A DNA stretch of 64,000 nucleotides from Entomortierella parvispora E1425 (GCA_020891255.1 BQFW01000012.1:2542001-2606000); one strand, 5' to 3'; counted from the stretch's first letter, positions 15,575 to 37,669 are shown. A program made the numbers and translations. The notes: a model not told the origin generated them from the letters alone.

Positions 15575-16854
15575 ACAAAGAAACGATGCGAGGCACCATT
15601 TTTTTTGTCAGATTTTGAAAAAAAAATAAAAAGAACTCTGCAAAAAAAAAAAAAAAGTTAATTCAATGGGCATTGGTTGGTTGGACTGCAAGCGGCGTGT
15701 TGTGGCAAAGTCTGCTGTGCTGCCTTTGGCCACGGAGAAGCAGATCGGCGAGAGATCTAGGGGAAGCAGAGAGACGTCCTGAGAAGAAGAAGAAGGTCGT
15801 TCAGGCACGCCGCACTTTTTTAAAGTTTTTTTTTTTTTTTTGATTTGTTGATCGACACGATTCGCCCGGCGTTTTCAGGCACAGAAGGACAGACAAGATC
15901 CCTGGGTCCAGCTGGACACTTTTTTTCATCTTCGAGTTCTTTTCTCTCTTTTGTTTCTTTTCCTTCTCCTTCTCTCCTCGTCCTTCATCCCTGTCATCAC
16001 CCGTTTCGGTCCTTCTTTGACGGGCAAGCTAGCCAAGTAGATGAACGAGCTCAGGAAAGCCAAAAACACAGCCTTTGCTCATTGAACCTACCTGGGTTGA
16101 TCTCTGGTCGGTCTTTCATTATTTTGTTTGACTGCCACCAAGGACACCCAACAACGCCTTAGATCCTACCGTTGGACAGCTTGTTCTTCTCGGCAAGGCA
16201 ACTGTCTCTGCATCCTTACCCATCTCCCTGTCTTCCTTTAGCTGGTTTCTGCTTGCGCTGGTTCAACAGAGCACGGTCATGAGAATCCCCAACAACAACC
16301 GATTGACCTGCGTCCTCGCTTAGGATCTTCACCTTTCTATCGCCCAGTGTGACCGGCGGTTCGACTCCACAGAATGGCGTGCCTGGTGGATTCCGATACA
16401 CGATGAACGGGTCTGCCGAATCCCTGGCCTCCGGCCTTGACTGTTCATCTGAACAACACCTCCTGGTATGATCTCTGGAAATCCACTACAGTGAATGTGA
16501 ACGTGGGCTGGAACTCGACCGTAACTGATACCAGCACCTTTGCGAGTTTGTTTTATGTCCCCAAGGTGGCCAATTCTACTGGATGGGGAGACAGAGAGCT
16601 TCGTGCTGGCGCATCTGAAGGACTAATCTGTCTACTTTGCTTAAGAGGACAATAACTTTGACCTTCATCCAACTGATCCAAGTTCCAACAATTCTCAACA
16701 ATGATAGACAGCGCTCTCATGACAAAAAAAAAAAGAAGTCCTGACCCAGTCATATCTGTGAGCGTTCGTTTGGAGGCGCGGTTTGTGCCAAAATAAACAA
16801 TAAAACGCTGCTATTTTTTGCGGCCTCTAGGATGGCATTCATCCCTTCCCTCAA

Positions 16855-18531
16855 ATGAGTTCTTTTGCCCTTCCTCCGACGCTGGCCACGATTCCCACGG
16901 AGGTCCTGGAGACACTCCTGCCATACCTCTGTCAAAACGATCTCTGCCAATGTGTCCTCACTTGTCGAGAGTGGAACAGGACCCTGATCCCATATCTCTG
17001 GCGAACCCTCGCCGTCAACTCACGCAGACAGTTCGAAGGGCTCTGCAATGACGAGGTTCAGCAGGCGCTGAAGAAGAATGGGCCATTCGTTCGTGAGCTA
17101 CAACTCGACCACAAGACGCTCTACAACCTACTTCTTCCTTTGCTGGAAACCCTCTTTTTCGAACCTGGTATCGAGGAACACGTCGCCTACAAGATCAGTC
17201 CCTTCACCCGTCTTCATACTTTGGAGTTGCACAGGATCAAAAAGTATCCAAAGAACTGTTTCGATGGAAGAATCTTTGCCTTGGTTCGTCAAAATCCTAC
17301 CATTAAGCGGTTCAAGATTAGCATGCAGATGGACCCCAACACGTTACTAGAGTTGGTGAAACAGCACATGCCCAACCTGGAGGACTTGGACCTGGATATC
17401 ACATGGCAAGGAAATGTCAAAGAGCTTTTGGAGACCCTCCCCGGGAAATTACGCACCGTACGAATCTTAGGTGTCCAACACTCTGCATCACATCAATTGG
17501 CCAAAGGCTCAAAGGCGTACTACGCGAACATGGCAGCAAGGATTGTCCGTCCACACCATGCCCTTGAGACCCTCGACATTTCTGGCTCGCTCAATGGACA
17601 GGAGGAAGATGTTTTGGTCAGGTTCTTGAAGAGTTGCAGCTCGAAACTAAGGGCATTCAAAGGCAAGGGCTTTACTTGGTGTTGTGGAAACGATGCCCTG
17701 ACCCAGGCCCTGTTAAGCATTGGTTTCGTTTTCACAGAGTTGTACATAAGTGACATTCCCTACTACATCCCCGACGATGATTTAGCCGGGATCATCTCCA
17801 ACAGACCCTGGGTTGTTCTGGAGCTGAACACGCGCCATATGAGATCTATGGCTGTCGACGCACTTGTTGAAAACTGCGACGATCTCACAGTACTCAGCCT
17901 TGTTGAACCAAGCAACTATCATCTCGCAAAAGCCTGCACACTTACAGACACGCACATGCGAATCATCGTCTCGAAAGCCAAGAATCTGAAATCCCTACAT
18001 ATCCAAAGTATCCTCATGGCGCACACGATCATGTCAAGGGATGTTTTCATGTCCGATTGGGCGACTACGACTTTGGAGCAGATTAGCTTCAAGATTGAGG
18101 TCCCACGCGTCAACATGGATGAAATAATCGATGAAGAAGATGAACCATTCCAAACCTCTCGCCACATCCAGCGGCAAGTATTTCGGCGCCTGGGACAACA
18201 CAAACACCTCAAAAAGTTGAACATCGGGGGCAAAGTTACGGATCCTTCGTCAGGGTTGTATAAAATCCAATACAATTGCCTTGAGTTGACACTGGAGGCA
18301 GGGCTGGATGAGTTGAGGGATCTCAAGAGACTGGAGGTGCTGAATGTTCGCAACATGGACCACCGCATCGGAGTGCCCGAACTTGAATGGATGGTCCATA
18401 ATTGGCCCCGACTCAACCTTGTGTTGGGCGCCCTGGAGGGTCCAGACCTGCCGAACGACAAGGTCAAGGATTGGATCGAAACCTACCGGCCTTCATGGTT
18501 GGGGAGAGGCAGTTGCGGCTACTTTCGCTGA
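16855..18531 (+). CDS. F-box/LRR (RNI-like) protein, array copy 1, intact, 558 aa
   Basis: N-terminal F-box (IPTEVLETLLPYLCQNDLCQCVLTCREWNRTLIPYLW), LxxLxL repeats, conserved C-terminal CLELTLEAGLDEL...ELEWMVHNWPRL; intronless. Confidence 0.9.
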   Translation: MSSFALPPTLATIPTEVLETLLPYLCQNDLCQCVLTCREWNRTLIPYLWRTLAVNSRRQFEGLCNDEVQQALKKNGPFVRELQLDHKTLYNLLLPLLETLFFEPGIEEHVAYKISPFTRLHTLELHRIKKYPKNCFDGRIFALVRQNPTIKRFKISMQMDPNTLLELVKQHMPNLEDLDLDITWQGNVKELLETLPGKLRTVRILGVQHSASHQLAKGSKAYYANMAARIVRPHHALETLDISGSLNGQEEDVLVRFLKSCSSKLRAFKGKGFTWCCGNDALTQALLSIGFVFTELYISDIPYYIPDDDLAGIISNRPWVVLELNTRHMRSMAVDALVENCDDLTVLSLVEPSNYHLAKACTLTDTHMRIIVSKAKNLKSLHIQSILMAHTIMSRDVFMSDWATTTLEQISFKIEVPRVNMDEIIDEEDEPFQTSRHIQRQVFRRLGQHKHLKKLNIGGKVTDPSSGLYKIQYNCLELTLEAGLDELRDLKRLEVLNVRNMDHRIGVPELEWMVHNWPRLNLVLGALEGPDLPNDKVKDWIETYRPSWLGRGSCGYFR

Positions 18532-18695
18532 GAACCATACCTTTAAAAATAAAAAAAAAGTGTCCGTGTGGACAAACCGTTTGCTCTCTTCTTTCTCTTT
18601 GTGCGACACAACCTTCGACCGACCATGATAGAATTGCTGCTGACCTCCATAAGAAGGATCGCCTCGCCAACAGAGGAATTCATCCGCCCATCAGA

Positions 18696-20394
18696 ATGAA
18701 GTTCCCCACCACCCCCGCGACATTGACCACGATTCCCCCTGAGATTCTGGAGACAATCCTGTCCGACTTCAGTCAGGGCGATCTTTACCGATGTGTTCTC
18801 GTCTCTCGAGAGTGGAGCCGAATGCTGATCCCATTCCTCTGGAGGACTCTTGCCATCTCTTCGCAGTCCCATGCCCACCGATTCAAGCGGAATGCCCGAA
18901 AGACATTGGCCAAGAATGCATTACATGTCCGCGAGCTACATCTCAGTTTCAAGGTCCTATACGAGCAGTGCCTTCCAACGACGTGACCTTCAATCTGCGA
19001 GGCAGCTTCCCTCATCCACCTGCACACTTTGGAATTGCATTATATCGTCAATCCAGGAGGCCTCTATGACGAAGGAATTGTGACCTTGGTCCGACAAAAC
19101 CCTTCCCTCAAACGCCTCAAGATCAGCACGGATATGGAATGCAACAAGTTGCTGCAGATGGTGACAGAGTACATGCCAAGTCTGGAAGACTTTGATCTAG
19201 ACACATTTGTGGCAAGGAGATGCCAAACTGTTTCTCGAGAACCTCCGCGAGGGCATACGCACTATACGAATGAAGTGGCTCCGTCACTTGAAATCATCGC
19301 AGCCGGTCCAAGGATTGAAATCCGACGACGCGAACATAGCGACAAGGAAAGTGCGTTCCCATCGTGCCCTCGAGTCTTTCGTTATCGATGGCATGCTCTT
19401 TGAAGAAGAAGAAGAAGAAGAAAAAGACGTTTTGTTCGAGTTCCTGAAGAGCTGTAGCTCTGAACTACACACACTCGGTGGCCTGGTCCCTACTTGGGGC
19501 ATCGAACATGTTGCTATTACCGAAGCCCTGAAAAGCATTGGCTTCATTTGGAAAGAGTTGCGTCGGGAAGCATTGTCGCCTGATGAGCCGGACGGCCGCG
19601 TTGCGTATTTTATCGCCAACTATCCTTTGACCCTCATTGACGCGCACGCGCAAAATGTGGGACCCATGTCTGTCGGAGCACTTCTGGAGAACTGTGACAA
19701 CCTCACCGTGTTCAGCATTGTGGGAAGCGGAACCACTGCCCTCACGGGAGCACACATGCAGACCATCCTGTCCAGGGCCAGGCATTCAAAATTTTGTCAG
19801 GTTCATGGCATCGTCGACACCCACATGATCTCTGCAAGAAATATCCTCATGTCCGAGTGGGCAAGTACGACTTTGGAGCACCTTGAATTCAAGATTGAAG
19901 TCCCTCGCGTTCATGACGAAGAAATCGCGGATGGGGAAGATCAAGCTGTGGCCATCTTGAACTCTCGCGACGTCCAGCGAAAACTCCTTCAACGCCTGGG
20001 ACAGCAAAAGCAACTGAAGACGCTCGCCTTAGGAGGCATGGTTATAACGCCTATCACGGGACAGCCTGGGAACCAACGCAATTGCCTTGAGTTCTCTCTG
20101 GAGGCTGGACTGGACGAGCTGGAAGATCTCAAGAAGCTTGAGTTGTTGGAAATCCACCACATGGACCACCCTGTTGGGTTACCGGAGCTCGAATGGATGG
20201 CTGAAAATTGGCCTCGATCCGTTAGAGTTAGACGTTAGTTCTTGAATAGCGAACCATCCAATTTTGTGGGGCTGAGACGAGGGTGGTTACACTCATTGCC
20301 CGTAGATTCACCTTCCGAGCATTAGGTCCAGGTTTGGATAGCCACTCACCAAGTCTTATGGTTGAGAGGCGGTGGTAGCAGCTGCCATTCCTGA
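18696..20394 (+). pseudogene. F-box/LRR pseudogene, array copy 2
   Basis: ATG at 18696; in-frame TGA at 18984-18986; +1 frameshift at ~19206; extra sequence at ~20220-20305 before a degenerate 3' end (VQVWIATHQ..W) ending ~20394. Confidence 0.85.
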
Positions 20395-20459: not shown

Positions 20460-20781
20460 CAATGTTGGTGCTTCAAACGAGAGGATGCAGGAGGCGCAAG
20501 GGTTGCTTCTTGTAGCTGGAGAACGTGTCCAGCTTCCATGGATGGATAAACATATGACCCGCATCGCTGACACTGGTGAGCTTGAGCACCACGAACTACA
20601 GTTTCGACTCTGATGTACGAACAGCAAAGCAGAATAATGAGCACCCTTCATCCAACGCTCTGCAGATACAGTCAGAGTGACTCTTGGATCCATCTGTGTA
20701 TCGAGGCGCAGTTTGTGCTCAATCGACAATAAAAAAGCGTTCCAATGAGCCTCCCTGGAAAACCATTCACCTGCTCCTCAA

Positions 20782-22479
20782 ATGAATTCTTTCACCTATC
20801 CCCTAACGCTGGTCACGGTTCCCATGGAGACCCTTGAGGTCATCCTTCCATACCTAAGTCAAAAGGATCTTTGTCATTGTGCCCTCGTTTCTCGAGAATG
20901 GAACAAGGTTCTGACTCCTTTCCTCTGGCAGACCATCACCATCCCTCCAAGCATCACCATCCGTTTAAACAAGCAAGCCGATATTTTCTCCAAGGATGAG
21001 ATCCAGCAGGCGTTCAACAGGAATGCGTCGTTTGTTCGTGTGCTACATCTCGTCCTTAAATCGATGTATGAACAGTTTCTCCCAACACTGGATACCGTCT
21101 CTTTAGATCCTAGAGTGGGCGACAGCAGGATCTACAAAACAGGACTCCTCTCCAACCTGCACACACTGGAATTGCACCATATCCATATCCAGCCGGGCGA
21201 GAAAACCTTGCTGGAAGAGAGAGTCTTTGCCTTGGTTCGTCAAAACCCCTTGATCAAACGCTTCAAGATCAGCCTGAACATGGACGACCAGGCGTTGGTA
21301 CAACTGGTCACAGAGTACATGCCAAACCTGGAGGACTTTGAGCTGGACATGCAATGGCAAGGAAACCTGAAAGAGTTTCTTGAGAACCTTCCGGAGAGTA
21401 TTCGCAAGGTGCGAATGCTGAGTGCCCTTCACGTGGAGCCGGAACCACAGGCCCAAACCCCGACAATGGACGGCGCAAGCGCCATGGCAAGGAAAGTTCG
21501 CTCCCATCGCGCCCTTGAGTCTTTTATCATCTCTGAGACGATCGAGGGACGGAAAGAAGACGTTTTTGTCAGGTTTTTGCAGAGTTGTAGCTCCAAACTA
21601 AGGGTATTCGAGGGCATCGGAGCAATGTGGTGTCCCGAAAACAAAGCAATTGCTCAGGCTCTATCGAGCCTTGGTTTTGTTTGGACAGCGTTGCGCAAAG
21701 ATGATCTCCCGTATAATATACCCGACGAGGATACAGCCAGGATCGTTACCAGCAGTCCTTTGACTGTGATTGAGTTGTTCACACAACATTTGCGATCCAT
21801 GACCGTCAAAGCTCTTATCGAGAAATGCGATAATCTTACAACACTCGGCATTGTTGAGGCTAGGGCTGATACTCCCGAAGGCACCTCCGCATTCACAGGC
21901 GCGACTATACAAACAATCTTGTCCAAGGTTAAGAATCTGAAATCCCTCTATGTCCACAGTCCCCTCAAAGCCCATAGGATGATTGCAGAGGATATTCTCG
22001 TGTCCGAGTGGGCAACCACCACTTTGGAGTACCTTGTTGTCAAGATTGATACTCCACGCGTCTATGAACATACAACGGATGAGGACGAAGGGGCGGTAGA
22101 CATTCAAAGATCAAGGGAAATCCAACGATCGCTTCTTCGTCGCCTGGGACAGCAAAAACACCTCAAGGGCTTAGTGATTGGTGGTGGGGTTGTATCAGAT
22201 AGCACAGGGAATTACGAGAACCAGCGCGACTGCCTTGAGCTTTCATTGGAGGCAGGACTGGACGAGTTGAAGGATCTCAACAGACTGGAGTTGTTGAGAG
22301 TTCACAACATGTACCATCGTATCGGAGTGCCGGAACTTGAGTGGATGGTCCAAAATTGGCCCCAAATCAACCATGTGTTCGGGGTGGTGGGTCCTGAGCG
22401 GCCGAGCGATGAGGTGAAAGACTGGATTGCAACTCACCGACCTTCGTGGCTGACAGGAGGCATTTGGCATTCGCGTTGA
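20782..22479 (+). CDS. F-box/LRR protein, array copy 3, intact, 565 aa
   Basis: F-box VPMETLEVILPYLSQKDLCHCALVSREWNKVLTPFLW, LRRs and conserved C-terminal block; intronless. Confidence 0.9.
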   Translation: MNSFTYPLTLVTVPMETLEVILPYLSQKDLCHCALVSREWNKVLTPFLWQTITIPPSITIRLNKQADIFSKDEIQQAFNRNASFVRVLHLVLKSMYEQFLPTLDTVSLDPRVGDSRIYKTGLLSNLHTLELHHIHIQPGEKTLLEERVFALVRQNPLIKRFKISLNMDDQALVQLVTEYMPNLEDFELDMQWQGNLKEFLENLPESIRKVRMLSALHVEPEPQAQTPTMDGASAMARKVRSHRALESFIISETIEGRKEDVFVRFLQSCSSKLRVFEGIGAMWCPENKAIAQALSSLGFVWTALRKDDLPYNIPDEDTARIVTSSPLTVIELFTQHLRSMTVKALIEKCDNLTTLGIVEARADTPEGTSAFTGATIQTILSKVKNLKSLYVHSPLKAHRMIAEDILVSEWATTTLEYLVVKIDTPRVYEHTTDEDEGAVDIQRSREIQRSLLRRLGQQKHLKGLVIGGGVVSDSTGNYENQRDCLELSLEAGLDELKDLNRLELLRVHNMYHRIGVPELEWMVQNWPQINHVFGVVGPERPSDEVKDWIATHRPSWLTGGIWHSR

Positions 22480-22860: not shown

Positions 22861-23304
22861 GAATAAAATGAGACCGATCACGGCTTTTTTTTTTTTTTTT
22901 TTTTTTTTGCCTTGAACGAGAGGATGCAGGACACCAAGCCCACAAATTGAGACGGAGCCATTGAATGAACAATGTCATCAAGGAGCAGGGGTTGTCTCGT
23001 CATAGCTAAATTGCAGAACGTGCCCATCTGTCATTGAAGGATAAACATGCTGAGTCGCATCAATATGCTTGGGTAGCACAGGCTATAATCTCGACTGCAA
23101 AGAGCATGGCAAACCCAGAGTTTCGCCGCAAGTCGACAATGGAAGAACCAATGCCCTCAAGTCAACGCTGTGGAGACGCAGTCGTAGTGATCTTTGGATT
23201 CATCTGTGAGCACTAGTGTGGAGGCGCAGTTTGCGCACGATGGAGAATAAAAAGAGATCGCATGCAAGCGACTTCCAGGAAAACCATACACTTAGTTCCT
23301 CAAA

Positions 23305-24936
23305 ATGAATTCTTTCACCTCCCCCCCAACGTTGGTCACGGTTCCCACGGAGATCCTTGAGGCCATCCTTCCATACCTAAGCCAGAATGATCTTTGTCAT
23401 TGTGCCTTAGTCTCTCAAGAGTGGAGCAGGACTTTGACCCCTTACCTCTGGAAAACCATCGCCACCCGTTCGCGCAAAAAAGCGGACCGATTCTGTAGGA
23501 ATGAGTCCCAACAGGCATTGAAAAGCAACGCAACATTGGTCCGCGAGTTGCATCTCATTCACAAGTCAATGTACGAACTGTTTCTCCCGTCACTGAAAGT
23601 CATCTTTTCCGAGCCTGGTGTGGGCGAGCACAAGATGTACACCACAGGACCTCTCACCAGTCTACACACCTTGGAGTTACACAGCCTCAGGCATCCAAGA
23701 GACTCACTCGATGGAAGAATTCTCGCTCTTGTTCGTCAAAATCCTTCCATAAAACGTCTCCAGCTCGGTATTCGGATGGACGCAAACATGGTTATGCAGA
23801 TAGTGACGCGGTACTTGCCAAATCTGGAGGAACTTGATCTGTACCCACTGTGGCGGGGCAATCTCAAAGAGCTCTTGGAGAATCTTCCCGAGGGGATCCG
23901 CACTGTGAAATTGAGAGATATCAGACATATAGCACCACAGCCGTCGACTACAGTCTCTGGAGAGGATACCACAAATCCAGTTGGAAAGGCCGTTCGCCCT
24001 CATCGTTCCCTTGAAACTCTCCAGATCAATGGCTACCTCAACGAATGTGAGGAGGAGGTTTTGATCGAGTTCCTGGAGAGCTGCAGCTCCAAACTAAAGT
24101 CCATCAGCGGCATGGGATCCACCTGGCAGATCGGAACTCCGGCCATTTTCCAAGCATTGTCGAAAATTGGCTTTGTTTGGACAGAGTTATCCCCCAAAGA
24201 TATGGCGCGTTTTGATTCCGACACGAATGTTGCCGGCCTTATCGCCAACAACTCTTGGACCGTCATTGAGATGTACCTTCAGAATCTGGGATCGGCCTCT
24301 GTCCAGGCTCTTGTCGAGAACTGTAACAATCTTACGGTGCTCAATATCATGGAGGGCGGTAACTCGGCGTTCACAGGTGTACACATGCAAACCATCTTAT
24401 CCAAGGCCAGGAACTTGAAGATGCTTCAAGCGCACTGGCTCCTTGAGGCCAACAAGATCTGCGCGGCAGATATTTTCATGTCCGAGTGGGCAACCACTTC
24501 GTTGGAGCACATTGATTTTAAGATTGATGTCCCACGCGTCTATGATGAAGATATAACCGAGGACGACAATCAGGCGGTGGCTATCCAGGAGTCTCGAAAC
24601 ACTCAGCGGCGTGTTCTCCGACGCTTGGGGCAACAAAGACAAATGAAGAAATTGATTGTTGGTGGCATGGCCACAACCCCTAGCACAGGAGTATTCGGAC
24701 ACCAACGTAACTGCCTGGAGTTTACACTGGAGGCTGGACTGTACGAATTGAAAGACCTCAAGAACCTTGAACTCTTAGATATTCACCATATGGACCACCG
24801 TGTTGGAGTACTAGATCTTGAGTGGATGAAAGAGAATTGGCCCCAGGTCAACACTGTCGTGGGCATGCGAGATTCCCTTCACCCGAGCGAACAACGGAAT
24901 AACTGGTTGACGATAAATCGACCCTCGTGGGGGTGA
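23305..24936 (+). CDS. F-box/LRR protein, array copy, intact, 543 aa
   Basis: F-box VPTEILEAILPYLSQNDLCHCALVSQEWSRTLTPYLW, LRRs and conserved C-terminal block. Confidence 0.9.
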   Translation: MNSFTSPPTLVTVPTEILEAILPYLSQNDLCHCALVSQEWSRTLTPYLWKTIATRSRKKADRFCRNESQQALKSNATLVRELHLIHKSMYELFLPSLKVIFSEPGVGEHKMYTTGPLTSLHTLELHSLRHPRDSLDGRILALVRQNPSIKRLQLGIRMDANMVMQIVTRYLPNLEELDLYPLWRGNLKELLENLPEGIRTVKLRDIRHIAPQPSTTVSGEDTTNPVGKAVRPHRSLETLQINGYLNECEEEVLIEFLESCSSKLKSISGMGSTWQIGTPAIFQALSKIGFVWTELSPKDMARFDSDTNVAGLIANNSWTVIEMYLQNLGSASVQALVENCNNLTVLNIMEGGNSAFTGVHMQTILSKARNLKMLQAHWLLEANKICAADIFMSEWATTSLEHIDFKIDVPRVYDEDITEDDNQAVAIQESRNTQRRVLRRLGQQRQMKKLIVGGMATTPSTGVFGHQRNCLEFTLEAGLYELKDLKNLELLDIHHMDHRVGVLDLEWMKENWPQVNTVVGMRDSLHPSEQRNNWLTINRPSWG

Positions 24937-25185
24937 GGTGGGTATGGTTGCTCATCATTCAATAAAAACTTGTTTCCTCAACGCCCATGAGTTTCCACGC
25001 ACAGAAATGTTCGGAAAAGAAGTGGGTTGGCCAATCGCAACATCCCCCCCCCCCCGTCGCTTCATCACTTTAGCCATGCTCGATGACTCCAGGTGCCATC
25101 ATTGTCAAAAAAAAAAAAAAAAAAAAAAAGAAAAAAAGGAGGTAGTAGTTCAACGACGATGGAGACCTTTCAGGAAATGCTCGAA

Positions 25186-25385
25186 GAGGCGTAGTTTGTA
25201 GGCAATGGACAGTATATAATAAAACCTTACGCTCTGCACTTTCCCTCACATTTCGCCTTTATTCCCACAACTCCGGGACGGCCTCCACAGAGACGCAATC
25301 TCGCCAATCTCGGGAAGGGAGATCTTTGTCTTCATATGGTTGTATCTCGAGAGTGAAATTCCTTTAACTCTGGCAGGAAGTTAGC
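25186..25385 (+). pseudogene. Highly decayed F-box relic with retained promoter
   Basis: GAGGCGTAGTT plus TATATAATAAAA, then gatctttgtc...gtatctcgagagTGA matching the DLC..VSREW codons with Trp changed to stop. Confidence 0.5.
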
Positions 25386-27461: not shown

Positions 27462-27777
27462 TAAAGGCCAAGGGAAGAGAACGAAGATTGAATGATGTTT
27501 ATTGTATTGATACTAAAGGTTGGCTTTGCTGTGAGTGAAGGCGCTGCACGGTCAGTCTGATTTGACTGTTGCACGAGGTCTATTTGTTTGCAGCACAGCA
27601 CCATCGAATTGGCAATGGTCACCCTGCAAAAGTAAAAAAGAAATAAGCATGAGCATCGCTTCCCCCTGGCACTTTGTCGTGGATTCTAGGCGAAGCTTGT
27701 GACGAGGCGCAGTTGGCCCGTCGTATAAAAACCTGCCCTCTTGCCGTTTCAAGGCTGGAAATCGACCTTGCCTCAAA

Positions 27778-29403: not shown

Positions 29404-29600
29404 GTCAGATATGATTCTTCTCCTCTCTCATGAACAACAAATAAAAATAAAGTGGGCCAGGTACAGCAACATCAAATTATTGGCAATGAGCTCTCAAAAA
29501 GAAAAAAAAAAGGCTCCCCCTGGCGCTTTGATATGGAGGCGCAGTTGACCCACCATATAAAGACCTTCCCTCTTGCCGCAAGGCTCGACCTTGCCTCAAA

Positions 29601-31229
29601 ATGAATATTCCCACCGCTCTCCCGACCCTGGTCACAATTCCCACGGAGACCCTGGAGACAATCTTGCCGTATCTCAACCAGGGCGATCTTTATCATTGTG
29701 TTCTCACCTGTCGAGAGTGGAACAGGACCCTGATACCCTACCTCTGGCGCACTTTATCAGTCTGTTCAAGCGCGCGTGCTAGTCGATTTGGGGAAGATGC
29801 TCTACGGGCACTGAAAATGAATGGATCGCTTATCCGTGAGCTGCATCTTGGCCACAGATTGTTATACGAGCGCTGTCTTCCGTGGGAGCCTGTCGATTCC
29901 AATCTTTGGGTAGGCGAGGCCTTGATCAACAAGAGAGGTTCCCTTGTCAATCTCACTCGCCTGCACACTCTGGAGCTGAAAAGCTTCCACCATTTCGTCT
30001 ACGGGTTCTTTCATGCTAGAGTTACTGCCCTGGTCCGTCAAAACCCTTCTATCCAATGCTTCAAGATCAGTAGGAAGATGGATGCGAGTGCTTTGATGCA
30101 GCTAGTGATACAGTACATGCCAAATCTGGAGGACCTTGAAATAGACACTGTGTTTCGAGGGGATGTCAAAGAGCTCCTTGAGAACCTCCCCGAGAAAGTC
30201 CGTACAGTAAAACTGAGAACGGTCGAGCACTTGACGTCGCCGGCGACCTCGGGACCAGATGATACGAAAGCGATGGCAAGGAAAGTGCGCTCTCACCATG
30301 CCCTCGAGTCTCTCACCCTCTCTGGATTGCTCAGTGGGCGGGAAGAGGATGTTTTGGTCAAGTTCCTGGAGAGCTGCAGCCCCAAGCTAAAGATATTCGA
30401 TGGCATGGGATGCTTCTGGTGCACTGGAAACAAGGCCGTTGCCAAAGCTCTGTCCAGTATTGGTTTTGTTTGGACAGTGCTACGCTGGAACGAACATCCT
30501 TATAATATAGCGGACGAAGATGTCGCCAAGGTCATCGCCAACAAGTCCTGGACTGTTATTGAAGTGTTCGCAAAGAAGTTGAGATACATGGCGGTCCAAG
30601 CGCTTGTAGAGAACTGCGACAATCTCACGGTACTCAATGTCATGGAACATGGCTATACAGCATTCACAGGTGCACACATGCAGACCATCTTGTCGAGGGC
30701 CAAGAATCTGAAATCCTTACAGGTCCATTGGCTCCGGGGTACCCTCAAGATAAGTACAGAAGATATTCTGATGTCCGAGTGGGCGACTACCTCCTTGGAG
30801 CACATTGATTTCAAAATTGATGTCCCACGCGTCCATGGTCAGATAGCCGATAAGGATGACCTAGCGGAGGAGATTCAGAGCTCTCGAGACATCCAGCGAC
30901 AGCTTCTCCGGCGGCTGGGACAACAAAAAAACCTCAAGAGGCTGATGATCGGTGGCAAGATTACGGGGACAAGATCAAGGCATCTCAAGCACCAACGCAA
31001 TTGCCTAGAGTTTACATTGGAGGCGGGTCTGGACGAGTTGAAAGATCTCAAGAAACTCGAGCTCTTGGATATTCACCACATGGATCACCGTGCCGGGGTG
31101 CCAGAGCTTGAGTGGATGGTCAAGAATTGGCCTCGACTCAGCCATATTAGAGGGATTCTAGACTGCCTTTACCCTCCTGGCGACAAAGTTCAGGTTTGGA
31201 TGGAAACACGCCGTCCCTCATGGAGATGA
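29601..31229 (+). CDS. F-box/LRR protein, array copy, intact, 542 aa; recent duplicate of the 27778 copy
   Basis: Same architecture; long identical DNA runs shared with 27778-29403. Confidence 0.9.
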   Translation: MNIPTALPTLVTIPTETLETILPYLNQGDLYHCVLTCREWNRTLIPYLWRTLSVCSSARASRFGEDALRALKMNGSLIRELHLGHRLLYERCLPWEPVDSNLWVGEALINKRGSLVNLTRLHTLELKSFHHFVYGFFHARVTALVRQNPSIQCFKISRKMDASALMQLVIQYMPNLEDLEIDTVFRGDVKELLENLPEKVRTVKLRTVEHLTSPATSGPDDTKAMARKVRSHHALESLTLSGLLSGREEDVLVKFLESCSPKLKIFDGMGCFWCTGNKAVAKALSSIGFVWTVLRWNEHPYNIADEDVAKVIANKSWTVIEVFAKKLRYMAVQALVENCDNLTVLNVMEHGYTAFTGAHMQTILSRAKNLKSLQVHWLRGTLKISTEDILMSEWATTSLEHIDFKIDVPRVHGQIADKDDLAEEIQSSRDIQRQLLRRLGQQKNLKRLMIGGKITGTRSRHLKHQRNCLEFTLEAGLDELKDLKKLELLDIHHMDHRAGVPELEWMVKNWPRLSHIRGILDCLYPPGDKVQVWMETRRPSWR

Positions 31230-31377
31230 GTTGGATGTGATTCTTCTCCTCGCTCATGAACAACAAATAAAAATAAAGTGGGCCAGGCACAGCCAAAAAA
31301 AAAAAAAAAAAAAAAAAAAAAAGACAAGGGCGTCGCTCTCCGTCTCTTTGACTTGGCCTTCAGACAAAGTTTGTGAC

Positions 31378-31441
31378 GAGGCGCGGTTGGCCCACTGTAT
31401 AAAAACCTGCCCTTGCCGTTCCAAGGCTGGCAATCGACCTC
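31378..31441 (+). promoter_or_regulatory. Orphan F-box array promoter with no downstream ORF
   Basis: GAGGCGCGGTT at 31378, TATAAAA at 31398, and a leader matching 27730-27766 that breaks off just before the expected ctcaaaATG. Confidence 0.7.
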
Positions 31442-31474: not shown

Positions 31475-32332
31475 AATCAGAACGGACAGAGAAAAATAGA
31501 CTGGAGGGATAACTTCTTGAGAGCAGGGGGGACAAAAAAAAGTTGGCCGCCAAACATCAAGGGGGACGGATGCCGGATCGTCAAGAGATGTTTTTTTGAT
31601 CTCACACGCGTTTGAACAGGTTGCTGACGCGCTCGTGCACGCGCAGGTACAGTATGAACTGAACCCATTCAAGGGCCGACCTCACCTCGCCCTTGAGCTC
31701 CTCACCCTTGCTCCAGGGACAAGCAGAGGAGGTATTGGTCGGGTCCAGGAAAGCCCATGTCAAAATTGGATGCTCAAGAGCGTAGGAGCAGAGCGATCAT
31801 TACGATATGGAAGATCCCTTCCCCCATTCAGCACAGGCAACGGATCGAGGGATTATCTCCCCGTGGATAGGGTGATAGAGTATCTGAGCAAGGTGCATCT
31901 CAGATAGAACCACGGTCGAGGCAGTGCCTGCCTCATATCTTCGAAGGGGCGTTGATCGAAGCTGTTTTAGCACAAGAAGCGGCCGAGTATCGAACCCATT
32001 CCTGCAATGGTTCAACTCCTTAATGGTTCGTCGATCCACATCCAGTGGCAGTAAAGGAACTCGAGCTATCGAGCCGTCCAAGGCCGACTGTGGTCGGCTG
32101 CAAACAGAATAAATGTCCCGACCAGCAACGGTCTGATTAGCTCTGGGCCCCAGGACGGTTGATGTCGTCGCTGTGTTGTTGTTGTCATCGTTTTTTTTGT
32201 GAGCACTTTCCCTGTTTCCTTTATTGGACATGGCTGACATTTTAGAGCGAGGAGGCACAGCCAAGGACACTATAAAGGTTTGCTCTGTTCCTTTTCAGCT
32301 TTGGCTTCCACCTCTTTCCTCATATCCTCATA
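31475..32332 (+). repeat. Duplicated spacer/promoter, copy B
   Basis: Collinear with 26270-27038. Confidence 0.85.
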
Positions 32333-33994
32333 ATGACATCCTGTACCCCCCCCCCCCTGACACTGGTCACGATTCCCACGGAGGTATTGGGGGCAATTGT
32401 GGCATACATCAGTCAGACTGCTCTTTGCCAATGTGTCCTCGTTTCTCGAGAATGGAACAGGGCTCTGACCCCTTCCCTCTGGCGGACCATCACCATCCGT
32501 TCAAGCAAGTCAGTCGATATTTTCTCCAAGGATGAGGTCCACCAGGCGTTCAACAGGAATGCTTCGTTTGTCCGTGTGCTACATCTCATCCACAGATCGA
32601 TGTATAAACAGTTTCTCCCAACGCTGGACGTCATCTCTTCGAATCCTGACGTGGGCGAATTCAGGATCTACAGAACAGGACTCCTCTCCAACTTGCACAC
32701 ATTGGAGTTGTACTATATCAATATCCAGCCGGACGAGAAAACCTTGCTCGAAGAGAGAATCTTTACCTTGGTCCGTCAAAACCCCTTGATCAAATGCTTC
32801 AAGATCAGACTGACCATAGACTACACCGCGTTGGTACAACTAGTAACCGAGTACATGCCAAACCTGGAGGACCTTGATCTGGACATGCGGTGGCAAGGAA
32901 ACCTGAAAGGGTTTCTTGAAAATCTTCCCGAGAGTATTCGCAAGGTGCGATTGAAAAGCGTCCTTCACGTGGTACCGGAACCGCAGGCCCAACACCCAAC
33001 AATGGATGTCGCAAGCCAAATGGCAAGGCAGGTGCGCTCCCATGGCGCCCTCGAGTCTTTTATTATCTCAGAGACGATTAAGGAACGGAAAGAGGAAGTT
33101 TTTGTCCGGTTTCTGGAAAGTTGCAGCTCCAAGCTGAGGGTATTCAAGGGCCTCGGACCAGTGTGGTGCCTCGAAAACAAAGCCATTACTCAAGCACTGT
33201 CGAGCATTGGTTTCGTTTGGACAGAGTTGCGCAGGCATGAGATTCCGTATACCACATCGGACGAGGATATAGCTAGGATCATTACCAGCAGTCCCTGGGC
33301 TGTGATGGATCTGTTCACGTACCATTTGAGATCCATGGCTACCAGGGCGCTTGTCGAGAACTGCGATAATCTCACATCACTCACCATTGTAAAACCTGAA
33401 GATGGCGATCTGGAACACACCTATGCATTCACAGGCACGACCATGCAGACCGTCCTGTCCAAGACCAAGCATCTGAAATCCCTCTATGTCTACAGTCACC
33501 TCAAACCCTACAGGATGATCGCAGAGGACATTCTCACGTCCGAGTGGGCAACCACCACTTTGGAGCACCTTGTTGTCAAGATTGGTGTCCCACGCGTCTA
33601 TGAACATATAACGGATGAGGACGAAGGGGCGGTAGACATTCAGAGATCAAGGGAAATCCAACGGCTGTTTCTCCGTCGCCTGGGACAGCAAAAACACCTC
33701 AAGGTCTTAGGGATTGGCGGTAGGGTTATATCGGACAGTACAGGAAAGTACGAGCACCAACGCGACTGCCTTGAGTTTTCACTGGAGGCGGGACTGGACG
33801 AGTTGAAAGACCTCAAGAACCTTGAACTGATAGATATTCAACATATGGACCACCGTGTTGGAGTACCGGAGCTTGAGTGGATGACCAAGAATTGGCCCAG
33901 CATCGGCCATGTTATAGGGGTTCTAGACTGTCTTTACCCTCCTGGCGACACAGTTCAGGGTTGGATAGAAACACACTATCCCTCGTGGAGATGA
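32333..33994 (+). CDS. F-box/LRR protein, array copy, intact, 553 aa (apparent chimera)
   Basis: Body resembles the 20782 and 27039 copies; final ~20 codons and 3'UTR resemble the 27778/29601 copies. Confidence 0.9.
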   Translation: MTSCTPPPLTLVTIPTEVLGAIVAYISQTALCQCVLVSREWNRALTPSLWRTITIRSSKSVDIFSKDEVHQAFNRNASFVRVLHLIHRSMYKQFLPTLDVISSNPDVGEFRIYRTGLLSNLHTLELYYINIQPDEKTLLEERIFTLVRQNPLIKCFKIRLTIDYTALVQLVTEYMPNLEDLDLDMRWQGNLKGFLENLPESIRKVRLKSVLHVVPEPQAQHPTMDVASQMARQVRSHGALESFIISETIKERKEEVFVRFLESCSSKLRVFKGLGPVWCLENKAITQALSSIGFVWTELRRHEIPYTTSDEDIARIITSSPWAVMDLFTYHLRSMATRALVENCDNLTSLTIVKPEDGDLEHTYAFTGTTMQTVLSKTKHLKSLYVYSHLKPYRMIAEDILTSEWATTTLEHLVVKIGVPRVYEHITDEDEGAVDIQRSREIQRLFLRRLGQQKHLKVLGIGGRVISDSTGKYEHQRDCLEFSLEAGLDELKDLKNLELIDIQHMDHRVGVPELEWMTKNWPSIGHVIGVLDCLYPPGDTVQGWIETHYPSWR

Positions 33995-34203
33995 GATGGA
34001 TGTGATTCCTCTCCTCGCTCATGAACAACAAATAAAAATGAAATGGGCCAGGCACAGCCACAAAAAAAAAATTGACGAGGGCATCGCTCCCCCTGTCTCT
34101 TTGACATGGATTTCAGGCAACCTTGTGAAGAGGCGCAGTTGGCCCACCGTATAAAAACGTGCCCTCTTACCGTTTCAAGGCAGTCAATCGACGTTTCCTC
34201 AAA

Positions 34204-35855
34204 ATGATTGTTTCCACCCCTCCTCCGACCCTGGTCACAATTCCCACGGAGGCCCTCGAGACAATCTTGCAGTATCTCAGCCAAAGCGATCTTTGTCAAT
34301 GTGTCATCACCTGTCGAGAGTGGAACAGGGCTCTGACACCCTACCTCTGGCGCACTTTTTCAGTCTGTTCACTCGAGCATGTCAGACGATTTGGAGATGA
34401 AGCTGTACAGGCACTGAAGTTGAATGCGTCGCTTGTCCGTGAGCTGCATCTTGGCCACAGATTGTTAGACGACTGCTGTCTTCCGCGGGTCAAGACTTTC
34501 GATTCCAATCCTGGGATAGGCGAGGTCCTGATAAGCAAGAGAGATTCCCCTGTCAATCTCACTCGCTTGCACAGTCTGGAGTTGGAACACAGGCGCTATT
34601 CGGACAACAGATTCTATGCTAAAATCATTGCAAGAGTCATTGCCTTGGCCCGACAACACCCTTTCCTCAAACGCTTCAAGATCAGTACTCAGATGGATGC
34701 TGGTGCTGTGGTGCTGTGACACAGCTAGTGACACAGCACATGCCAAATCTGGGGGGACTTTGAAATAGATACAATTTTTGAAGGAGATGTCAAAAGGCTC
34801 CTTGAGAACCTGCCCAAGAAAATTCGTACTGTAAAACTGACAACTGTTAATCACTCTGGGTTACAGCCGTCACCACAGGGCTTGAGACCAGATGACAGGG
34901 AAGCAATGGAAAGGAAAGTGTGCCCCCATCATGCCCTCGAGTCTCTGGCCCTCTCTGGATTGCTCAATGGGCGGGAGGAGGATGTTCTGATCAAGTTCTT
35001 GGAGAGCTGCAGCCCCAAGTTAAAGACATTCGATGGCATGGGATTCATCTGGTGCGCGAGAATCAAAGCCATTGCCCAAGCTCTCTCAAGTATTGGCTTT
35101 TCTTGGACAGAGATACGCCGGGAAGCATTGTCGCACGAGGTGTCCGACAGCGATATCGCTATGATCATCACCAATCATCCATTGACCGCCATTGGAGTGT
35201 ACACTAGTATGCTGGGATCTTTGGCTGTTAAAGCACTGGTGGAGAACTGCGACAATCTGACGATACTCAATGTCATGGAACATGGCGATACAGCACTCAC
35301 AGGTGCACACATGCAGACCATCCTATCAAGAGCCAAGAATCTGAAATCTTTACAGGTCCACTGGCTCCTGAGTGCCGAAAAGATAAGTACAAGAGACATT
35401 TTCATGTCCAAGTGGGCGACTACCTCCTTGGAGCACATAGATTTCAAGATTGATGTCCCACGCGTCCATGGCCATCAGATAACCGATAAGGATGATCGAG
35501 TGGAAGAGAATCAGGGCTCTCGAGACATTCAGCGACGGCTTCTCCGGCGCCTGGGACAACAAAAAAACCTCAAGAGGCTGATAGTCGGCGGTATGGTTAC
35601 GGGGCATGGATCAGGACGAGCATCAACAGCAATTGCCTAGAGTTTACATTGGAGGCAGGACTGGACGAGTTGAAAGATCTCAAGAAACTCGAGCTCTTGG
35701 ATATTCACCACATGGATCACGGTGTTGGAGTACCAGAGCTCGAGTGGATGATCAAGAATTGGCCTCGACTCAGACAGATTAAAGGAATTATGGACAGTCT
35801 TCGCCCGCCGAGCTACAAAGTGATGACCGGGATGGTCTCCCATCGACGCCCATGA
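34204..35855 (+). pseudogene. F-box/LRR pseudogene (27778-type)
   Basis: 8-nt tandem duplication ggtgctgt at ~34705-34720 creates TGA at 34717-34719; +1 G at ~34755; net -4 shift at ~35612-35630. Confidence 0.85.
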
Positions 35856-36019
35856 ACAAATAAAAATCGGCTTTTTTTTTTTTTTTTTTCTTTTTGTGAG
35901 CTCTCTCCTCCATCATTTGGACATGACAGGCATTCGACGGTGAGGAGGCGCGGTGATAGCACAAGCACAGTATAAAAGACCGCTCTGCCCCTGCTTGTCT
36001 TTCATCTCTTTTCCTCGAA

Positions 36020-37669
36020 ATGAGCCTTCTCACCGGTCCACCTGCACTGGTTCCCGCGACACTCGTCACCCTTCCCACGGAGATCTTGGAAGCAATCGTG
36101 CCATTCCTCAGGCAGAATACTCTATGTCGATGTGTTCTTGCTTCCCGGGCATGGAACAGGACTCTGACCCCTTACCTCTGGCGGACTCTTGGCATCCACA
36201 CTCGCAGGCAAGCGGGTCTATTCTCTAATGATGAGGCTCAGCTAGCAGTCAAGAGGAATGCGCCGTTTGTCCGTGTGCTACACCTCCTCCGCAAATCGGT
36301 GTATGAAGGGCTCCTCCCAACTCTGGAAATTGTCTATTCAGATCCTGGCCTGGGAGATCGCAGGAGCTACACAACAGGACTCCTCTCCAATCTACACACC
36401 TTGGAATTGCACTCTGTCAGGCAGGAAAAGAACTCTTTGCTCAACGGGAGAATCTTTGCCTTGGTCCGTCAAAATCCCTTGATCAGATACCTCAAGATCA
36501 CTCTGCACATGGACTACCAAGCGTTGATGCAACTGGTCACGAAGTACATGCCAAGTCTGGAGGAGCTGGATCTGGATACGGTGTGGCAAGGAGATCTCCA
36601 AGAGTTCCTCGAGAACCTTCCCGAGAGTATTCGCAAAGTGCGAATGGTAAGCGTCCTTCACGTGGCACCAGAACCGTCAACCCGGGATACAGAAAACGAT
36701 AGCGCAAATGCAGTGGCAAGGGAGGTGCGCTCTCATCATCAACTCGAGTCTCTCTTCATCAATGGAACATTCAACGAGCAGAAGGAAGATGTTTTGCTCA
36801 AGTTTTTTGAGAGCTGTGGCCCCAAGTTGAAGACCTTCAGCGGCACAGGATTTCTCTGGTGCATTGAAAACATTCGCACGACTACAACTGCCTTGGCCAA
36901 CTTTGGCTTCAACTGGACAGAGCTGCGTCCGCCTGCGTTGCATAAATACGAGTCCGACAGCAGAATGGCCACGGTCCTCGCCCACCATCCCTGGACCGCG
37001 ATTGAGGTGTACCTGCACAATTTGGGAACCATGGCTGTCAGAGCCCTTGTCGAGAACTGCAGTCACCTCACCGTACTCAACATCCAAGAGAACCGCAGGA
37101 CTGCACTCAAAGGTCTCGACCTACAAACCATTCTCTCCAGGGCCAAGAATTTAAAATCTCTCCAGGCCCACTGGCTCATCAGCGACGACAAGTTGAGCGC
37201 AATGGATATACTCTCCTCCGAATGGGCCACCACGACGTTGGAGCATATTGATTTCAAGATTGACGTCCTGCGCGTGAAGGATCACGAGATAACCAGAGAG
37301 GATGGAGCTCTTCAGACTTCTCGCAACATCCAACGGCAGGTTCTTGGACGCTTGGGACAACAAAAACACCTCAAAAAGCTGGTGATCGGAGGGAAAATTG
37401 GAGATCCCATGACAACCATGTACAACTACCAACTCAGCTGCCTTGAGTTTACACTGGAGGCTGGATTGGATGAATTGTGGGACCTCAAACAACTCGAGCT
37501 GTTGGATATTCACCACATGGATCACCGTGTGGATGTGGAAGAGCTTGAGTGGATGGTTGAAAATTGGCCTCGAATCTCGGAGGTCTCTGGTATACTGGAC
37601 AGCTTTCGCCCTCCGAGTTACGAGGTCCGAGCCTGGTTGGCGGCCAATTCGAGACCCTCATGGCGGTGA
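36020..37669 (+). CDS. F-box/LRR protein, last array copy, intact, 549 aa
   Basis: F-box LPTEILEAIVPFLRQNTLCRCVLASRAWNRTLTPYLW, LRRs and conserved C-terminal block. Confidence 0.9.
   Translation: MSLLTGPPALVPATLVTLPTEILEAIVPFLRQNTLCRCVLASRAWNRTLTPYLWRTLGIHTRRQAGLFSNDEAQLAVKRNAPFVRVLHLLRKSVYEGLLPTLEIVYSDPGLGDRRSYTTGLLSNLHTLELHSVRQEKNSLLNGRIFALVRQNPLIRYLKITLHMDYQALMQLVTKYMPSLEELDLDTVWQGDLQEFLENLPESIRKVRMVSVLHVAPEPSTRDTENDSANAVAREVRSHHQLESLFINGTFNEQKEDVLLKFFESCGPKLKTFSGTGFLWCIENIRTTTTALANFGFNWTELRPPALHKYESDSRMATVLAHHPWTAIEVYLHNLGTMAVRALVENCSHLTVLNIQENRRTALKGLDLQTILSRAKNLKSLQAHWLISDDKLSAMDILSSEWATTTLEHIDFKIDVLRVKDHEITREDGALQTSRNIQRQVLGRLGQQKHLKKLVIGGKIGDPMTTMYNYQLSCLEFTLEAGLDELWDLKQLELLDIHHMDHRVDVEELEWMVENWPRISEVSGILDSFRPPSYEVRAWLAANSRPSWR

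Follow-up and report, generated by a model that had tools for sequence, protein, structure and literature searches.

Our analysis of a 64,000-nucleotide stretch of the Entomortierella parvispora E1425 genome (the window, from whose first letter all positions are counted) revealed, at positions 16773 to 37669 of the plus strand, a cluster, 21 kb long, in which copies of one predicted ubiquitin-ligase adaptor gene follow each other head to tail. The cluster holds seven intact intronless open reading frames (ORFs) of 541 to 565 amino acids (FB1 to FB7), two pseudogenes, a 140-aa F-box-only ORF, a solitary copy of the promoter, and two to three weak relics. Glutathione S-transferase (GST) genes lie on both sides, the right-flank gene inverted relative to the left-flank one. 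The genes and gene remnants are as follows.

15032-15571, plus strand: main exon of the left-flank GST gene (GST_C_3; Pfam E 5e-13), 45% identical to the right-flank GST
16855-18531, plus strand: FB1, intact intronless F-box/LRR gene, 558 aa (ORF; PF12937 E 3.4e-8)
18696-20373, plus strand: psi1, full-length pseudogene interrupted by an in-frame TGA (18984) and a +1 frameshift (near 19205), its C terminus truncated
20782-22479, plus strand: FB2, intact, 565 aa (ORF, PF12937), sister of FB6 (72% aa and 80.9% nt identity)
23305-24936, plus strand: FB3, intact, 543 aa (ORF, PF12937)
25264-25375, plus strand: weak and uncertain relic of a lost copy, matching positions 19-149 of the model, in the F-box region (nhmmer E 2e-4)
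27039-27461, plus strand: F-box-only ORF of 140 aa with an ATG start, FB6/FB2-type, homologous over its first ~108 aa
27778-29403, plus strand: FB4, intact, 541 aa (ORF, PF12937)
29601-31229, plus strand: FB5, intact, 542 aa (ORF, PF12937), the copy used for the AlphaFold2 model
32333-33994, plus strand: FB6, intact, 553 aa (ORF, PF12937)
34204-35860, plus strand: psi2, full-length FB4/FB5-type pseudogene, 82.5% nt identity to FB4
36020-37669, plus strand: FB7, intact, 549 aa (ORF, PF12937)
37804-38382, minus strand: main exon of the second, right-flank GST gene (EMPS_09171; Pfam E 1.5e-10; 100% match to P0059)

All seven intact ORFs announced by the sequence-only reading were recovered with fixed coordinates, as were the F-box-only copy and both full-length pseudogenes with their lesions mapped; in psi2 these are frameshifting indels near 34701 (+8), 34751 (+1), 35616 (-5) and 35629 (+1). 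The public gene model EMPS_09164 corresponds to FB1 fused to psi1. That reading had counted at least 13 head-to-tail units. Our data revealed 10 units with protein homology, and 13 is reached only by adding the weak relics and the orphan promoter. Three relics were found as DNA-level matches, all of them weak: the one at 25264-25375, for which a protein-level search gave no match; a second at 31676-31753, seen only at the DNA level (nhmmer E 5e-6); and its duplicate at 26429-26515 (nhmmer E 0.11). The array genes are indeed intronless among spliced neighbors, as evidenced by the canonical GT..AG introns of the neighboring HECT and SDR genes and their absence from the array. Nucleotide identity among copies spans 61 to 90%, and the intact copies share ~50% pairwise protein identity, apart from the closer FB4/FB5 and FB2/FB6 pairs.

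Upstream of the copies lies a putative promoter module, a GAGGCGCRGT box followed by a TATA-like WATAAAR element, located as follows.

16773-16805, plus strand: FB1 promoter module, box and TATA-like element (pattern search; promoter alignment)
20703-20734, plus strand: FB2 promoter module (pattern search)
23221-23252, plus strand: FB3 promoter module (pattern search)
26957-26983, plus strand: promoter module of the F-box-only copy, with the variant box GAGGCACAGC (pattern search)
27704-27730, plus strand: FB4 promoter module (pattern search)
29536-29562, plus strand: FB5 promoter module (pattern search)
31304-31440, plus strand: orphan promoter that duplicates the whole FB4-type 5' flank (77% identical to 27628-27768), with box and TATA at 31378-31404
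32252-32263, plus strand: FB6 variant promoter box GAGGCACAGCCA (promoter alignment)
34130-34156, plus strand: psi2 promoter module, still intact (pattern search)
35945-35977, plus strand: FB7 promoter module (pattern search)

A pattern search for the module returned nine matches in the window versus zero expected. Genome-wide there were nine matches, eight of them inside the array, and we report this candidate module, private to the array, as a new observation. The box has decayed at psi1, and the orphan promoter, already proposed from the sequence, is followed by neither an ATG nor an ORF. Since the intact copies have retained a common promoter, they are probably switched on together, as judged from promoter conservation.

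How did the copies arise? Two segments of the array are colinear over more than 3 kb, with component segments 69 to 85% identical by blastn.

26276-29363, plus strand: block A, comprising a 5' segment with a relic, the deleted FB6-type copy, and FB4
31487-35821, plus strand: block B, comprising a 5' segment with the relic at 31676-31753, FB6, and psi2

This two-gene segmental duplication is likewise a new observation. The F-box-only ORF is an FB6/FB2-type copy that has lost ~1.3 kb of internal sequence. Together with the two pseudogenes, the orphan promoter and paralogues of different ages, the block duplication and the internal deletion bear out the proposal of a birth-and-death array. The other marks of such a tandem family are also present: mixed-age paralogues, fragments, and a single clade (SH-aLRT 100) that unites, on a long stem, the seven array copies and one metagenomic protein in a tree built by quick search mode.

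Each intact copy carries the Pfam F-box-like domain PF12937 above its gathering score (7/7 copies, 33.6 to 38.7 bits versus a cut-off of 24.3), and the usual F-box residues P14, E16, L18, L30, C33, W40, L48 and W49 are invariant in all seven. The AlphaFold2 model of FB5 (pLDDT 85.5, pTM 0.77) consists of an F-box followed by a predicted LRR solenoid, in which strand/helix repeats alternate over residues 50 to 540; this places a predicted LRR solenoid C-terminal to the F-box, as defines the FBXL subclass. The LRR assignment rests on this predicted fold because Pfam LRR matches were below threshold throughout. Foldseek matched the model best to TIR1, COI1, MAX2/D3, FBXL17, FBXL2, FBXL3 and Dia2 (E down to 2e-11, for TIR1), and most of these structures were solved as complexes with Skp1 or ASK1. 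VIA gave Z scores of 13.5 to 15.1 to FBXL17, FBXL2, Skp2, TIR1 and COI1 (14.9 to 15.1 for FBXL2 and FBXL17), with the TIR1 and COI1 alignments beginning at residues 4 to 14, and ranked FBXL proteins no higher than generic LRR proteins. The E1425 genome contains three Skp1 genes. The Pfam and fold matches agree with the earlier identification of F-box/LRR proteins of the SCF-adaptor type. Going by domain and predicted fold, the intact copies are most likely substrate receptors of SCF (Skp1-Cullin-F-box) ubiquitin ligases: the N-terminal F-box would dock on Skp1, and the target would be gripped by the LRR solenoid of ~490 residues, whose C-terminal repeats are strongly conserved. The contrast drawn before between a conserved F-box and C-terminal block and variable central LRRs is real, and the C-terminal motif stands as written, but the contrast is mild (majority-residue frequency of 0.75 to 0.78 in the F-box, 0.56 to 0.76 in the center and 0.81 to 0.84 in the C-terminal block).

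The expansion is specific to the lineage. In two relatives the two flanking GST genes are adjacent, with no F-box gene separating them: E. beljakovae has the order SDR-GST-GST, with a 1.2-kb spacer, and Mortierella sp. AD094 has two GST genes 3.6 kb apart with no long ORF in between. A single intronless copy, set in a different gene neighborhood, occupies the locus examined in each of Linnemannia hyalina, Mortierella sp. GBA39 and Dissophora. The E. parvispora E1425 genome yielded no further full-length match to the array orthogroup outside the array. Because the orthologues in other genera also lack introns, the intronless state is ancestral. In L. hyalina and GBA39, the promoter box likewise precedes the orthologue, at a distance of 250 to 320 nt.

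Estimates of omega by maximum likelihood (ML) were 0.43 overall and 0.33 to 0.53 by region. For old pairs, omega by NG86 was 0.25 to 0.42 at a dS of about 1. Of the seven intact copies, five stem from old duplications (dS about 0.8 to 1.5), and all seven ORFs (~550 codons) are still open at a dS of about 1; that old copies stay open at such omega values requires selection on each copy. The sole relaxed pair is FB4/FB5, the youngest (80% aa and 89.6% nt identity, dS 0.14, omega 0.75), compared with an omega of 0.44 in a single-copy orthologue pair from other species at equal dS. In the central columns 261 to 380 of FB4/FB5, omega was 1.32, a value that does not significantly exceed 1 (P = 0.30), and this stretch differed from the remainder of the gene (Fisher P = 0.047). 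Once duplicated, FB4/FB5 may thus have come under somewhat relaxed constraint or under pressure to diversify. Along FB4/FB5 and FB2/FB6, dS is strongly uneven, a hint of gene conversion; such conversion would bias the omega estimates as well as the tree.

We consider it reasonably probable (about 0.65) that the array arose by tandem expansion of one FBXL-type orthogroup within this lineage and is kept by moderate purifying selection in a manner that fits partitioning or broadening of targets. The founder would have been a single intronless gene seated between two old GST paralogues. It would have multiplied by unequal crossing-over or segmental duplication at the DNA level, carrying its own promoter (box plus TATA) each time. 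Duplication of the two-gene block, the copying of FB4 to give FB5 and the internal deletion that left the F-box-only ORF would have followed, as would two pseudogenizations and the stripping of one promoter of its gene. Purifying selection at an omega of about 0.4, the normal rate of the family, would keep the intact copies. The copies have a common promoter, yet their LRR surfaces have drifted to ~50% identity, as would be expected if targets were partitioned or their range broadened.

One potential alternative, which we regard as unlikely, is that the copies are largely redundant, the products of neutral birth-and-death with little functional divergence, kept for dosage or by chance and heading to loss. 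Loss is frequent, as evidenced by the pseudogenes, truncated copy, orphan promoter and relics; the identical promoter module implies one expression input; and an omega reaching 0.75 in FB4/FB5 is what relaxed constraint after duplication predicts. However, the age, open frames and low omega of five of the seven intact copies argue against redundancy, and ~50% protein divergence far exceeds what dosage duplicates normally retain.

More doubtful still is the proposal of the sequence-only reading that the array is a diversified receptor repertoire, part of an immune-like or non-self system in which SCF ligases would mark incompatibility factors or foreign proteins of endobacterial or viral origin for degradation. 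The lineage-confined tandem expansion with its pseudogenes and fragments would suit such a system, as would the raised omega of FB4/FB5 relative to the orthologue pair and the distinct central LRR stretch. Strain E1425 carries a Mycoavidus endobacterium (PMC8759367), and its three Skp1 genes and at least 150 F-box matches recall nematode and plant expansions. Against this, purifying selection across the LRR, which the proposal had itself named as contrary evidence, was observed in every region (ML omega ≤0.53), and the central excess in FB4/FB5 was not significant. An adaptive receptor repertoire is recognized by an omega above 1 focused on the ligand-binding surface, a pattern that the array does not display: variable sites were not enriched on strands (the concave face) compared with helices or coil (entropy of 1.03, 1.06 and 1.00, respectively), and the conservation profile of the array parallels the one seen among orthologues from other genera (Spearman 0.57). 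Only a single copy is present at the L. hyalina locus examined. All copies keep one promoter, whose box is common to the array and the single-copy orthologues and thus points to an old, housekeeping-like regulatory input rather than a newly evolved one. No RNase, HET or NACHT partner gene was found among the nearby ORFs scanned. Moreover, similar arrays recur across the genome, so this is not a special surveillance locus. A tie between the array and immunity is not supported by the present evidence.

Very improbable is an origin of the copies as retroposed or transposon-carried insertions, with the missing introns and the A/T tracts that follow genes as traces of reverse transcription. Every copy lacks introns, and 65 nt past the FB5 stop there is an AATAAA signal with a 29-nt A tract behind it. 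However, promoters and other 5' flanks were duplicated along with the genes, the two-gene block is colinear, orthologues in other genera are intronless as well, the tract elsewhere is T rather than A, and similar tracts occur outside the array; on these grounds we rejected processed retrogenes. A search for inverted repeats and Rfam elements found none. The chance that fewer genes were inflated through mis-assembly of long noisy reads is negligible: the assembly is nanopore-based and errors in the reads could account for single-base indels, the +1 of psi1 among them, but the copies differ by 10 to 39% in DNA, far too much for collapse or expansion, coverage was 409x with Pilon polishing (PMC8759367), and both pseudogenes carry non-homopolymer lesions (an in-frame TGA; 5- and 8-bp indels).

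The array is real, arose in this lineage, and is one of many such F-box clusters in the E1425 genome. Our literature search found no paper on F-box arrays in Mortierellaceae. A fungal precedent is offered by the Agaricomycetes, for which PMC10282164, citing Krizsan et al. 2019, describes a "remarkable expansion" of fast-evolving F-box, BTB and RING genes whose orthology erodes quickly. That expansion concerns Basidiomycota and is linked to fruiting-body development, whereas E1425 belongs to the Mortierellomycota. Within E1425, a further array of five head-to-tail intronless F-box ORFs lies on C10 (281-291 kb), and F-box gene clusters also occur on C8, C2 and C1. The C10 genes are short (about 240 to 330 aa), and, in contrast to these other arrays, FB1 to FB7 have a private promoter module and an orthogroup without another full-length member.

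The expanded, fast-evolving F-box families of nematodes and plants, including the S-locus SLF genes, resemble E1425 in several ways: they are large, clustered in tandem and subject to birth-and-death turnover that leaves pseudogenes, and they are accompanied by more than a single Skp1 gene. Their target domains are mostly FBA, FTH, DUF38 or Kelch, and these families have been shown to evolve under positive selection; in the E1425 array the target domain is a predicted LRR, and the omega analyses gave no significant sign of positive selection. The S-locus F-box (SLF/SFB) non-self system combines an F-box and an FBA-type domain with a linked T2 S-RNase and highly polymorphic haplotypes. We rejected this type for the array, given an LRR in place of FBA and the lack of an RNase domain among the flanking ORFs scanned. 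A further likeness is to the FBXL receptors (Skp2, FBXL2, FBXL3 and FBXL17; yeast Dia2; plant TIR1, COI1 and MAX2), in which an N-terminal F-box directly precedes an alpha/beta LRR solenoid, as predicted here. The array proteins differ from them in being only 12 to 16% identical in sequence, with Pfam LRR models below threshold, and in their strongly conserved C-terminal block, which they have in common only with other Mortierellaceae F-box proteins.

The interval from 16.8 to 37.7 kb contains seven intact ORFs of 541 to 565 amino acids each (FB1 to FB7), arranged head to tail on the + strand, along with two full-length pseudogenes (psi1 and psi2, located by piecewise matching), a copy reduced to its F-box, and weaker traces detected with a DNA profile:

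16855-18531, +, FB1, intact ORF
18696-20373, psi1, pseudogene; in-frame TGA (18984), +1 frameshift (near 19205), shortened end
20782-22479, +, FB2, intact ORF
23305-24936, +, FB3, intact ORF
25264-25375, weak relic (DNA profile, E 2e-4)
26429-26515, weak relic (DNA profile, E 0.11)
27039-27422, F-box-only piece, within an ATG-started 140-aa ORF
27778-29403, +, FB4, intact ORF
29601-31229, +, FB5, intact ORF
31676-31753, weak relic (DNA profile, E 5e-6)
32333-33994, +, FB6, intact ORF
34204-35860, psi2, pseudogene with frameshifting indels of +8, +1, -5 and +1
36020-37669, +, FB7, intact ORF

The same three broken units were recovered by tblastn, by a profile HMM run on the six-frame translation, and by the genome search. 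At the protein level, the HMM search returned no further relics at E < 1 except for a chance match in the HECT gene. The units listed in the sequence-only reading were thus all recovered by ORF calling, tblastn, profile HMM, genome search or DNA profile; its count of at least 13 units stands if the weak relics and an orphan promoter are included, but not otherwise. The assembly that holds the window comprises 38.9 Mb in 20 contigs. The published E1425 genome, from a strain that hosts a Mycoavidus endobacterium, was given as 38.66 Mb in 19 contigs plus the mitochondrion, based on nanopore reads at 409x and Pilon polishing (PMC8759367).

In the public annotation, model EMPS_09164 (847 aa) is chimeric: a false intron connects FB1 (16855-18462) with the 3' portion of psi1 (19288-20235). 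In the 2-kb gap 3' of FB3 lies a 118-aa ORF (25626-25982, - strand) that has no Pfam match and whose N-terminus is hydrophobic and resembles a signal peptide; it may encode a small secreted protein from within the array. No inverted repeats were found across the array and both flanking glutathione S-transferase (GST) genes, and an Rfam scan of the window gave no match.

All seven intact copies carry a Pfam F-box-like domain (PF12937) at residues ∼11 to 58, above the gathering score, and the Pfam LRR models stayed below threshold in all seven. The C-terminal motif quoted in the sequence-only reading is present in the copies. An AlphaFold2 model of FB5, built from a 42-sequence alignment (mean pLDDT, 85.5; pTM, 0.77), consists of an F-box of three helices and, from there to the C-terminus, a strand/helix solenoid. 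The top Foldseek matches of this model in the PDB were TIR1, COI1, MAX2/D3, FBXL17, FBXL2, FBXL3, and Dia2 (E down to 2.4e-11), and the majority of the matched structures are complexes with Skp1 or ASK1. With VIA-align, the FBXL proteins scored Z 13.5 to 15.1, and generic LRR proteins (ribonuclease inhibitor, Leptospira LRR proteins) scored equally well. The fold is thus that of an LRR solenoid, and the FBXL-type label comes from the F-box. F-box proteins are established as the substrate receptors of SCF ubiquitin ligases, and on this basis FB1 to FB7 are putative SCF substrate receptors. Three Skp1-domain loci were found in the genome (contig C9, 1403949-1404092; C2, 2246669-2246812; C6, 1654492-1654626). 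Most fungi have one Skp1 gene; in plants and nematodes, additional Skp1 genes go along with expanded F-box families.

How did the array grow? Most copies share ∼50% protein identity, the exceptions being FB4/FB5 (80%) and FB2/FB6 (72%). At the DNA level, identities were 89.6% for FB4/FB5, 82.5% for FB4/psi2, 80.9% for FB2/FB6, and 61 to 68% for the rest. The segment at 26276-29363 is colinear with 31487-35821 at 69 to 85% identity, which indicates that a two-gene block (one FB6-type and one FB4-type gene) was duplicated. In the first copy, block A, the FB6-type gene lost ∼1.3 kb to become the F-box-only ORF, while FB4 remained intact and was duplicated again to yield FB5. In block B, FB6 remained intact and the FB4-type copy decayed into psi2. 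Synonymous divergence is highly uneven along both young pairs: in FB4/FB5, dS is 0 over columns 201-260 of the codon alignment, and in FB2/FB6 it is 0.04 in some stretches versus >0.9 in others. Patches with dS of ∼0 (columns 201-260 and 41-80) lie beside stretches of 0.25 to 2.5 in these pairs. This patchiness suggests gene conversion between array members. With block duplication, internal deletion, pseudogene decay, and copies 61 to 89.6% identical in DNA, the earlier description of the array as a birth-and-death family was right.

In a quick maximum likelihood (ML) search with the seven copies and 35 homologues, the copies and one metagenomic protein formed one clade (SH-aLRT, 100) on a long stem. 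A profile search of the genome revealed no other full-length members of the orthogroup, the remaining matches being to the C-terminal block or the F-box only, in other long ORFs. Linnemannia hyalina, Mortierella sp. GBA39, and Dissophora globulifera each have one intronless copy per examined locus, with different gene neighbors, and in Actinomortierella ambigua two members are separated by 4.5 kb. In E. parvispora, the array lies between two GST paralogues that share 45% identity and are inverted relative to each other, and a short-chain dehydrogenase/reductase (SDR) gene follows beyond the right-hand GST. The congener E. beljakovae has the order SDR-GST-GST with a spacer of 1.2 kb, and in Mortierella sp. 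AD094 the spacer between two GSTs measures 3.6 kb and contains no long ORF. These arrangements argue that the F-box genes entered between an old pair of GSTs and multiplied there in the E. parvispora lineage. A small Crinkler-domain (PF20147) gene lies near the AD094 GST pair (locus L037, 12855-13316).

The array genes are intronless among spliced neighbors, as had been noted from the sequence: the TRIP12-like HECT ligase gene and the SDR gene have canonical GT..AG introns. Retroposition does not account for this, because the orthologues are intronless as well, which makes the intronless state an ancestral family trait. Tracts of 20 to 30 A or T occur in many intergenic spacers, often ∼20 nt past AATAAA. 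As they lie both inside the array (31294-31323, 35868-35898, 22884-22908, and 25106-25140) and outside it (also at 13976, 48670, 50985, 52124, and 54785), they look like a general gene-end feature of the genome and were rejected as marks of retroposition. Other ubiquitin-system genes in the window are the spliced HECT E3 gene (7196-13454, +), directly left of the GST, and a BTB/POZ-domain ORF right of the array (51025-52164, -); their proximity to the array is probably a coincidence.

Alignment of the 160 nt before each start codon revealed a conserved module, consisting of a GAGGCGCRGT box with a TATA-like WATAAAR 8 to 20 nt downstream, which sits ∼55 to 80 nt upstream of an ATG in TCCTCAAAATG context. 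The combined pattern has 9 matches in the window, located between 16773 and 35977, versus 0 expected, and genome-wide, 8 of 9 matches fall inside the array. The box-plus-TATA module is private to the F-box orthogroup of the array. The first box marks position 16773, where the sequence-only reading had begun the locus, and the orphan promoter of that reading corresponds to a full module at 31378-31404 with no ORF downstream. FB6 and the F-box-only copy have a variant box in common; the box is decayed in psi1 and intact in psi2. The box also occurs 250 to 320 nt upstream of the single-copy orthologues, once in L. hyalina (locus L031, 9691-9700) and twice in GBA39 (locus L034, 9681-9690 and 9745-9754), and Dissophora has the variant TGGCGCAGT. 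The box is thus older than the array. It is retained in every live unit, and the remaining spacer sequence has diverged past alignability. From this conservation we infer a shared regulator, under which the array copies would be co-expressed.

Are the copies diversifying as receptors would? Nei-Gojobori omega was 0.25 to 0.42 for old pairs (dS, 0.8 to 1.5), 0.37 for FB2/FB6, and 0.75 for FB4/FB5 (dS, 0.14). Codon ML gave 0.43 for the whole gene; by alignment columns, the values were 0.41 for the F-box (1-60), 0.53 (61-200), 0.46 (201-300), 0.46 (301-400), 0.41 (401-470), and 0.33 for the C-terminal block (471-560). The single-copy orthologue pair of L. hyalina and GBA39 has an omega of 0.44 at dS 0.148, so that the whole family is fast-evolving, and the rate of the old array members is not higher. 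In FB4/FB5, omega over the central columns 261-380 was 1.32 (Fisher P = 0.047 against the rest of the gene), a value not different from 1 (binomial P = 0.30). Per-site conservation in the array clade correlated with that in 32 orthologues from other genera (Spearman, 0.57), and mean entropy was the same for strands (1.03), helices (1.06), and coil (1.00). Entropy by secondary structure and the orthologue comparison thus gave no sign that change is concentrated on the concave, ligand-facing strands. The proposal of a diversified receptor repertoire found no support: regional ML omega stays at 0.33 to 0.53, and the strands are no more variable than the rest.

The array has company in this genome. 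PF12937 alone gave at least 150 scored matches, all above the Pfam cutoff, among 532 first-look candidates, including clusters on contigs C10, C8, C2, and C1, so that the array exemplifies a pattern seen throughout the genome. The C-terminal block is common to at least 60 dispersed long ORFs, many with an in-frame F-box, and a word search with this block matched Mortierellaceae F-box proteins only. On C10, ∼13 F-box matches fall within 260-320 kb, and five head-to-tail F-box ORFs of 239 to 334 aa lie on the minus strand at 281-291 kb (L036, 281000-290999), adjoining an enolase gene. Four open frames of 701 or 681 aa on C5 (near 292-294, 310-311, 338-340, and 614-616 kb; L016, L018, L020, and L023) each combine an F-box at the N-terminus with the C-terminal block of the array family. 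That their lengths are equal points to recent duplication and dispersal, or to transport by a mobile element.

The array is best read as a tandem expansion, specific to this lineage, of SCF-type F-box/LRR adaptors that are co-regulated and subject to moderate purifying selection. A bolder proposal is that the array, with several hundred other F-box genes and arrays, forms an SCF-based surveillance system of Mortierellaceae, in which co-regulated, rapidly turning-over receptors tag endobacterial, viral, or foreign-hyphal proteins for degradation and the GAGGCGCRGT box responds to a signalling pathway dedicated to stress or non-self. We consider this very unlikely. The immune-like reading, which we rate as unlikely, gained no support from the tests run, and the locus does not by itself demonstrate a fungal immune system.

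As a tandem expansion of adaptors, the array is cleanly and completely resolved. Its place of origin, between two old GST genes, is identifiable, several of its duplications and decay events can be put in order directly, and its units each come with a short promoter module that predates the array and is private to the orthogroup. This resolved history and the travelling module make it a convenient test bed for asking how ubiquitin ligases of early-diverging fungi gain new specificities and what transcription factor recognizes the box. Plants and nematodes are well known for tandem expansions of F-box adaptors. In Agaricomycetes, expansion of F-box, BTB, and RING genes has been described (PMC10282164). 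We found no description of F-box arrays or expansions in the literature on Mortierella, Mortierellomycotina, or Mucoromycota. F-box expansions are reported for plants, nematodes, and mushroom-forming fungi. For Mortierellaceae no such report was found, although the 39-Mb genome examined here contains at least 150 F-box matches and many arrays.
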